Assembly (NCBI RefSeq): GCF_964204645.1
Contig: NC_134034.1
Coordinates: 11,544,962-11,608,961 of the forward strand
DNA from: Tubulanus polymorphus
Taxonomy: Eukaryota; Animalia; Nemertea
Direction: 5' to 3'
Length of the DNA: 64,000 nt
Shown here: positions 22,301 through 23,953 of the stretch, piece by piece
Layout of the letters: every line of letters begins with the position of its first letter
How positions within the stretch are numbered: position 1 is the stretch's first letter
Notes under the pieces: generated by a model
Database searches by the model: none
The model's input: the letters and a program-made list of their open reading frames with translations, nothing else
What the model was told of the DNA's origin: nothing
Made by a program: the position numbers and the translations under genes

Positions 22301-23953
22301 ATGTTTGAGGTGTGTGGGTGGCCAATAGTACTGTAGGTGTCAGTCTGTTAATGTTAGCTCTGTTAGTGTTAGCTCTGTTAGTGTTTATTATTTATACGGA
22401 AGCTCGTTTTATTTTTTAATCTTTCACTGGCTGGCTATAACTGCATGCTTTATGTTTTTTGTTCTCAAAGAATGCCACCTGTCAATCAATTTTGTGTATT
22501 AGCCACGCCTCCAGACAGCTGCGTCTGCTCTACCCGCTCCTTAGTTGTGTTTGCATTTTCTGTTGTTGTGTTCTGTTTTTATAAGTAGGAATGCCACCTG
22601 TCAATCAATTTTGTATATAGGCCACGCCTCCCGGCAGCTGCGTCTGCTCTACCCGCTGTTTAGTTGTGTTCTGTTTTTAAAAGGCGTTCTATGATTTGCT
22701 GCGTACGATGAAGATGGAATACGGCTCCGAGCGACACCGACGTAAAAGTCAACCCGGTTACGAACCCGACGATAACAATCGAGGCTGTTGTAATATACAA
22801 TAGAGGGCGTCGTCAGACGGTATTAACCAATCATAATCATCCCTCCTCCACCACCCCTCGAAACCCCTCCCACGCCTGTCAATCATTTAGTATCCGCGTA
22901 ATCCGGATTATTGGATTAAGTGTTCTTTAAATATTGAAGGAGAATGATATATGATTTGATATGGGGATTTGGATTAACCACTAATCCGTATGAACCACTA
23001 ATCCGGATTGCGAATATGTTTATCGTTTATTTCAGTTACCTGTATTTATCAGTGATTGTTGCACATTTCTAGATCATGCACTACATCGAAAATGATTTTA
23101 AATATTACAGGGACCAGTTCAGAAACGATGGCCGTTCCATATTTCATTCGATTTGATGATGTCATAGGAGTATTAACTGAGGCGGCCATCTTTTCTGCAC
23201 GGGTCTGCAATGATGATTCATCTATAATTTTATCCCGATTCAAACGAAAACGTATTCATGGTGTTGGGAGTTTGTAATGAAATGATGATGTCATTGGGGG
23301 ATTTTTAGAGGCAGCCATCTTGCTTGAAGCCACTATAAGCCATGTCACTTGGCAATTTGATGATGTCATTGGGGACTTAATGATGGCGGCCATCTTTACT
23401 TCTGCAGAAGGTCCTTACGACTCTTTGATTCCTTTGAAACTCCTTCTAAATGGAAAATGCTTTTAAAGCTGCTCAAATGTCCTTTAATTTGGGCGAAATG
23501 TTTTAAAACTCCTTCAATTTTCAGAAAAAGGCTATCAAAAAAGTTTTATTGGACTACACCTAAATTCGTACAGTTGTGACGAGGATTTTCCCGATTTAGC
23601 AGTTGACAATTTAGAAACTGAGTTTAGTTTGTGTATTCGATAAAATTTACAAAACACTGAGTGAATAGTTTACCGATATAAACAGAACTGATTTAGGAGG
23701 AGTCTACAGTGATGCAGACGCTTCCTCGAAATTTCAAATGTTCGCCTTGAAAACTCCTTATATCCAAGAATGAACGATCTGTAGGTTCCCCCTGTTCTGT
23801 AGTTTACTGATGGTATGATTGTTATTTTCGTTGCAGGTATTTTTCGACTTAATGCGCGAGATACGATCGCGAAAATTAGAAGGTAGCAAACAAAGCAACG
23901 GCAAAAATAAGAAGAAAAAGGACAAATCCAAGCGGAAATGTACGATTTTGTAA
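19364..23953 (+). CDS. RALA: Ras-related protein Ral, canonical isoform (202 aa); exons 19364-19471 (acceptor 19333), 21256-21464, 21922-22006, 22080-22169, 23837-23953
   Basis: [70 protein letters not shown], polybasic tail and CTIL; Ral-specific effector loop YEPTKAD; GT-AG introns with consistent phases. Confidence 0.97.
19485..20125. repeat. CT-rich low-complexity tract containing three degenerate copies of the Ral exon end
   Basis: CCCTCTCCCCTTACT-type repeats; TTACAGTTCATGTACGACGAG copies at about 19556, 19624, 20051. Confidence 0.85.
21490..21890. repeat. Degenerate ~35-bp tandem repeat
   Basis: GATAATCTG..GCCTGGAGCCACCCCTCA units. Confidence 0.75.
22684..22803 (+). CDS. RALA: Alternative last coding exon of Ral ([39 protein letters not shown])
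   Basis: Phase-0 AAG acceptor, paralogous helix-5 start (AFYDLLR vs VFFDLMR), similar length to the canonical exon, ends exactly in a CaaX box preceded by a second Cys. Confidence 0.85.
   Translation, partial: AFYDLLRTMKMEYGSERHRRKSQPGYEPDDNNRGCCNIQ

Follow-up and report, generated by a model that had tools for sequence, protein, structure and literature searches.

Two alternative C-terminal tails from a single nemertean Ral gene point to a splicing switch of the membrane anchor

A survey of all 167 human Ras-superfamily genes identified KRAS and CDC42 as the only ones that change their membrane anchors by splicing (PMC9882654). Two further proteins bear on the tails described here. CNIQ, the CaaX box of Rap2A, has been seen bound to farnesyltransferase in a crystal, and Rap2A carries farnesyl (PMC3188499, PMC4159233); in yeast Ras2, with its end CCIIS, palmitoylation takes place on the first cysteine (PMC9927470). 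An exchange of the CaaX boxes between Rap2A and Rap2B made no difference in one assay (PMC4159233). For Ral, we found no papers on tail isoforms, functional ones included, in a literature search that covered mainly openly available papers; the described C. elegans isoforms RAL-1A and RAL-1B differ from the case reported here in that they vary at the N terminus (10.1101/2025.08.28.672893).

We analysed a window of 64,000 nucleotides (that is, the whole stretch of DNA under study) which contains, on the forward strand, the single-copy Ral gene of the nemertean Tubulanus polymorphus. Searches with the window's gene model used one exon at a time; the full-length queries were the database proteins P0109, P0230 and P0362. 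Exon 2 (21256-21464), which encodes the effector loop and switch II, gave RalA as the best match in PDB (E 1.7e-39; Ras about 1e-24), and it occurs once in the 268-Mb assembly. Both the effector loop and the G domain are nearer to RalA/B than to Ras. The other exons of the G domain are coding exon 1 with the P-loop (19333-19471, short-form ATG at 19364), exon 3 with the NKxD motif (21922-22006) and exon 4 with the ETSAK motif (22080-22169), whose phase-0 end carries the GT donor from which both tails are spliced; the junction between exons 3 and 4 was also seen in sequencing run X4. Together with the tail that we call A, the exons of the window are identical to the RefSeq Ral-A-like isoform X2 of T. 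polymorphus (P0230).

Downstream of exon 4 there are two tail exons, each following an AG acceptor in phase 0. Exon B (22684-22819) has 39 codons, the end GCCNIQ and a stop at 22801-22803; after another 16 nt, at 22820, comes a GT that scores as a weak donor. The coding part of exon A (23837-23953) has 38 codons with a polybasic run followed by CTIL, and run X4 contigs extend the 3' UTR of this last exon from 23954 to at least 25400. A reading of the locus made earlier from the sequence alone (below, the sequence-only reading) had pointed to open frames at 22684-22803 and 23837-23953, and we could confirm their exact translations, phase and AG acceptors. Among the AG-started open reading frames of the window, exons A and B are the only ones that combine a helix-5 motif with a CaaX end, and 40 dinucleotide shuffles yielded none. 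The two share the start xFxDLxR and the CaaX end, and their direct similarity is weak (E 0.005 over 10 residues). Exon B alone had no match in PDB, and a second copy of it was not found in the T. polymorphus genome.

The acceptor region of exon B is a 119-nt tandem duplication (22470-22683), the first copy of which ends in a decoy AG with a stop immediately after it; over this region run X4 has no coverage in the bins 22246-22596, and at position 22582 runs X3 and X5 have A where the window has T. Within the pyrimidine-rich repeat of intron 1, the 3' end of Ral exon 1 recurs in incomplete, degenerate copies (19540-19580, 19610-19650, 20030-20075), and some of these include the donor. The intron between B and A holds a dispersed repeat at 23065-23800, deeply covered by divergent contigs from other loci.

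At the other end of the gene, an optional upstream coding exon (13053-13081) encodes a cysteine-containing N-terminal leader. It is joined to 19333 in RefSeq isoforms X1 and X2 (P0230 and P0369 start with it), and isoform X3 has a different short leader. Since leaders are found with both tails in X1, X2 and X3, they combine with either tail. Short cysteine-containing Ral leaders are also seen in Lineus, scallop, pearl oyster, Aplysia, octopus and horseshoe crabs. The leader could possibly be a second, N-terminal acylation switch.

Both tails are used in spliced RNA. In run X4 we found contigs across the junction 22169>22684 (depth 6.04) and across 22169>23837 (depth 18.1), both GT..AG, which are the two junctions predicted by the sequence-only reading. 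The splice evidence comes from this one run, available as contigs (2014, library not on record), which must be derived from RNA because its contigs skip three introns at GT..AG. Contig depth is a poor measure, and all that we read from it is that tail B was probably the less abundant one in this sample. Runs X3 and X5 behave like low-coverage DNA and are uninformative on splicing, and run X6 has no contigs here. In RefSeq, tail A belongs to isoform X2 and tail B to isoforms X1, X3 and X4 (XP_074658801.1, XP_074658803.1, XP_074658805.1), and these models may draw on data overlapping run X4. Hence both tails are already present in the automatic annotation, and the earlier proposal of one Ral gene with two C-terminal isoforms from homologous exons is borne out by junctions and annotated isoforms. 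What seems to be undescribed is the pattern and the function, not the isoforms themselves.

A check for conservation of the second tail exon came out positive. Besides Tubulanus, we found it at the same phase-0 intron in seven genomes (loci L012-L018): in Lineus (GCCTVQ) and Mytilus (KCCILQ), in Saccostrea, which has two extra tail exons (GCCLIL and KCCVVM), in Capitella (polybasic, CIIL), in Branchiostoma, in Drosophila (HCCQLL) and in Macrobrachium (KCCCIS). Lineus also has RefSeq isoforms with alternative tails, and protein records add second tails for clams, snails, abalone, octopus, bees, locusts, termites, mosquitoes and other crustaceans. The Ral tail switch is unusually widespread. A soft coral Ral has neither an intron at the tail site nor a second tail, and one spider gene showed only exon A within 10 kb. 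In the oyster gene (L014:18270-20746) three tail exons stand in tandem, two of CC type and one polybasic. In amphioxus (L017:11502-11603 and 13466-13481), exon B may end at its own stop (CLQM, farnesyl-type) or be spliced to exon A with a +1 shift of frame (CSLI), and the two ends are annotated in different Branchiostoma species. TGCATG occurs upstream of exon B in several species, at no shared position, and we do not claim a regulator from it.

To see what the alternative tails have in common, we labelled 25 canonical and 31 alternative tails by hand; the species are related, and the counts below are descriptive. Cysteines at both -5 and -4 occur in 23 of the 31 alternative tails and in none of the 25 canonical ones, and 26 alternative tails have at least two cysteines among their last ten residues. 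Over the ten residues that precede the CaaX box, net charge averages +1.0 in the alternative tails (n=31) versus +5.8 in the canonical ones (n=25). Tubulanus fits this picture, with eight K/R in ten residues and one cysteine in tail A, against one K/R and cysteines at -5 and -4 in tail B. Judged by residues, the recurrent change is therefore the loss of the polybasic run and the gain of a cysteine beside the CaaX cysteine. It is not universal, as the second tails of abalone, octopus and Capitella are polybasic and have one cysteine.

Two traits that the sequence-only reading had put forward did not survive this comparison. The acidic segment before the CaaX box is particular to Tubulanus, where the net charge is -2 (0 in Lineus B). 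The change from geranylgeranyl to farnesyl is not a conserved feature either: all 25 canonical tails end in L, but so do 17 of the 31 alternative ones, the rest ending in M (7), Q (3), S (3) or I (1); 10-13 of the 31 have a farnesyl-type end. The predicted prenyl group changes in nemerteans, mussels and decapods and stays the same in most insects. Two unusual sets of ends were seen among the protein records. P0313, P0320 and P0345 (Logan Ral proteins) have a canonical helix-5 start but CC..Q ends, which suggests, from the residues, another possible route to the same anchor, and the leaf-beetle proteins P0176, P0198, P0204 and P0218 carry several terminal cysteines (e.g. CCLFMCC) where a standard CaaX box would be expected.

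We consider it likely that the two exons form a functional alternative-splicing switch of the hypervariable Ral tail. Skipping of exon B would give canonical Ral, with a geranylgeranyl group on CTIL and a polybasic run that binds acidic lipids. Inclusion of exon B would leave the G domain as it is, but alter the end of helix 5 and supply a tail that lacks the polybasic run and ends in C-CNIQ; this tail is predicted to carry farnesyl on the cysteine at -4 and a reversible palmitoyl group on the one at -5; exon A would then turn into 3' UTR. As B has its own stop before the last junction, its mRNA would escape decay and both isoforms would have one common 3' UTR. The choice of the tail may be regulated by tissue. 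Tail B Ral, instead of being held by charge, would cycle via Golgi and endosomes like N-Ras, KRAS4A or Rap2, and we find it probable that such a reversibly acylated pool would exist alongside a charge-anchored one. We infer the lipid types and the different localisation from Rap2A and yeast Ras2. Since the Rap2A/Rap2B swap was without effect, palmitoylation and the lost charge are more likely to be important than the farnesyl group as such.

The sequence-only reading took both exons as terminal, which holds for A. If it held for B as well, B transcripts would be polyadenylated at a separate site and have a separate 3' UTR, as those of CDC42 do, which would allow separate localisation of the mRNA; we give this little credence. 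The joint 22819>23837 is indeed absent among the run X4 contig alignments listed, Mytilus has an AATAAA 96 nt past its B stop, and B is the last exon in Drosophila and the prawn. However, the contigs of Tubulanus tell otherwise. Of the 194 nt of the B contig, 26 lie on exon 4 and 138 on 22681-22818, where it departs from the genome with exactly 30 nt left, and the A contig starts at 23836. The base before the GT donor at 22820 (G) is identical to the base before exon A, and the next base upstream differs, so the path from B to A and the path from exon 4 to A would coincide precisely from 23836 onwards, leaving the usual overlap of 30 nt. Beyond 22819 there is no unique RNA coverage (depth 0 at 22831-23064 in run X4), and in the 1033 nt between B and A there is no poly(A) hexamer AATAAA or ATTAAA. 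Separate last exons with their own 3' UTRs, as in CDC42, were accordingly not found in Tubulanus, as judged from coverage in one run and from hexamers. In amphioxus, exon B has a strong donor, and the four residues that close the annotated X2 tail correspond to exon A in the +1 frame, which shows that B is spliced to A there. Taken together, the lengths and ends of the contigs argue strongly that exon B is a 136-nt stop-carrying cassette (22684-22819) spliced to exon A.

One could also suppose that exon B is a duplicate in decay, or that its stop merely serves to lower Ral output, its protein being irrelevant. Its donor scores 2.8, against 7.5-11 for the constitutive donors, its acceptor is AAG, its share in run X4 is minor and its branch is long. 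We nevertheless regard this as scarcely credible. A stop less than 50 nt before the last junction normally escapes nonsense-mediated decay, and the B stop lies 16 nt before it, so the B mRNA should escape. Moreover, the frame is open and the CaaX box intact wherever the exon was found, from amphioxus to flies, and Tubulanus B and Lineus B are 33% identical and keep the end GCCxxQ though their flanking introns are unalignable and hold no conserved block. The B tails do evolve fast. The remaining alternative accepts that both isoforms are made, but assigns the importance of B to the end of helix 5 and the linker, that is, to contacts with a GEF, effectors, calmodulin or at kinase sites, with much the same membrane pool for both. 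It would fit the altered residues after DL and the dropped basic cluster, the polybasic B tails of abalone, octopus and Capitella, and the isoform specificity of Rap2, which is independent of the prenyl group. Yet the trait of B that is kept best in nemerteans, bivalves and pancrustaceans is the extra cysteine beside the CaaX cysteine together with the loss of basic charge, and the linker in between is not conserved; we therefore find a contact-based role unlikely and prefer the switch of the anchor.

The order of the exons differs between lineages: it is exon 4-B-A in amphioxus, the annelid, nemerteans and bivalves, and exon 4-A-B in fly and prawn. Exon order by itself was not accepted as proving independent origins, since a duplicated B-A block that undergoes reciprocal loss also yields A-B. 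Neither one origin nor several lineage-specific origins could be rejected by trees on 20-22 columns (p 0.65 for one origin and p 0.19-0.64 for lineage-specific origins in AU tests on 20 columns). Amphioxus B scores highest against oyster B2 (mean BLOSUM sum 31.7, versus 24-25 for the A groups), and oyster B2 and the pancrustacean B tails have 33-35 residues. These points hint at a single old exon; Tubulanus B falls in a longer, lophotrochozoan class. A tentative scenario, which we would doubt slightly sooner than believe, is that the last common ancestor of bilaterians had a single Ral gene in which splicing selected either a polybasic or a palmitoylated tail, an arrangement kept in most invertebrate lineages and lost in vertebrates, where two genes of CCaX end replaced it. 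If this is true, the choice of the Ral tail is far older than KRAS4A and includes the unstudied isoform B of Drosophila Rala, and fly Ral genetics based on one cDNA would have missed a differently anchored pool of Ral.

Ral would be the third case of an anchor swap, hidden because vertebrates appear to lack the tail switch. The switch is either very old or has arisen repeatedly with the same outcome, an adjacent cysteine in place of the polybasic run, and either origin bears on the question why small GTPases retain two types of anchor. Drosophila permits a direct test of whether the roles of Ral in the exocyst, in neurons and in stem cells split by anchor.

Among the known systems, vertebrate RALA and RALB belong to the same subfamily and have the same phase-0 intron before the tail; they differ in that the tails seen are of the canonical type, ending in CCIL and CCLL. 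The sequence-only reading had credited them with geranylgeranylation only, which is incomplete, RALA/B being palmitoylated too. Drosophila Rala isoform B is a second tail of CC type annotated in the databases, but here A precedes B. Tail B has the CaaX box of Rap2A and the adjacent cysteines of yeast Ras2, which are the sole tails of their genes and not splice alternatives. The ubiquitous and brain forms of CDC42 likewise exchange, by an exon swap, a polybasic tail with a prenyl group only for one with prenyl and palmitoyl. In CDC42, however, these are alternative terminal exons with separate 3' UTRs (PMC13236570, 10.1101/366369), whereas Ral B is most likely a cassette. Also, the CCaX box of CDC42 (cysteines at -4 and -3) has the palmitoylated cysteine after the prenylated one, whereas in Ral B, with cysteines at -5 and -4, the extra cysteine precedes that of the CaaX box.

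The closest system is KRAS4A/4B, and the comparison made by the sequence-only reading fits in that two homologous last coding exons are joined to the same exon of a Ras-family G domain. As in Ral, where the joint is deduced in Tubulanus, the upstream stop-carrying cassette of KRAS4A is spliced to the downstream exon, which then stays untranslated (PMC5945503); this layout does not apply to the pancrustacean Ral genes with their reversed order. One KRAS tail is palmitoylated and the other is polybasic (PMC7680328), as the residues of the Ral tails would predict. On the other hand, gene and origin are independent: exon 4A derives from NRAS exon 4 in jawed vertebrates (PMC9882654), a duplication from which exon B, part of an invertebrate Ral gene, does not descend. 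Both forms of KRAS are farnesylated, whereas the CaaX boxes of Ral predict geranylgeranyl versus farnesyl, and in tail B of Ral the second cysteine is directly adjacent. The tail intron of KRAS presumably lies four codons further upstream than that of Ral. The Ral tail switch works like KRAS4A/4B, but it is not homologous to it.
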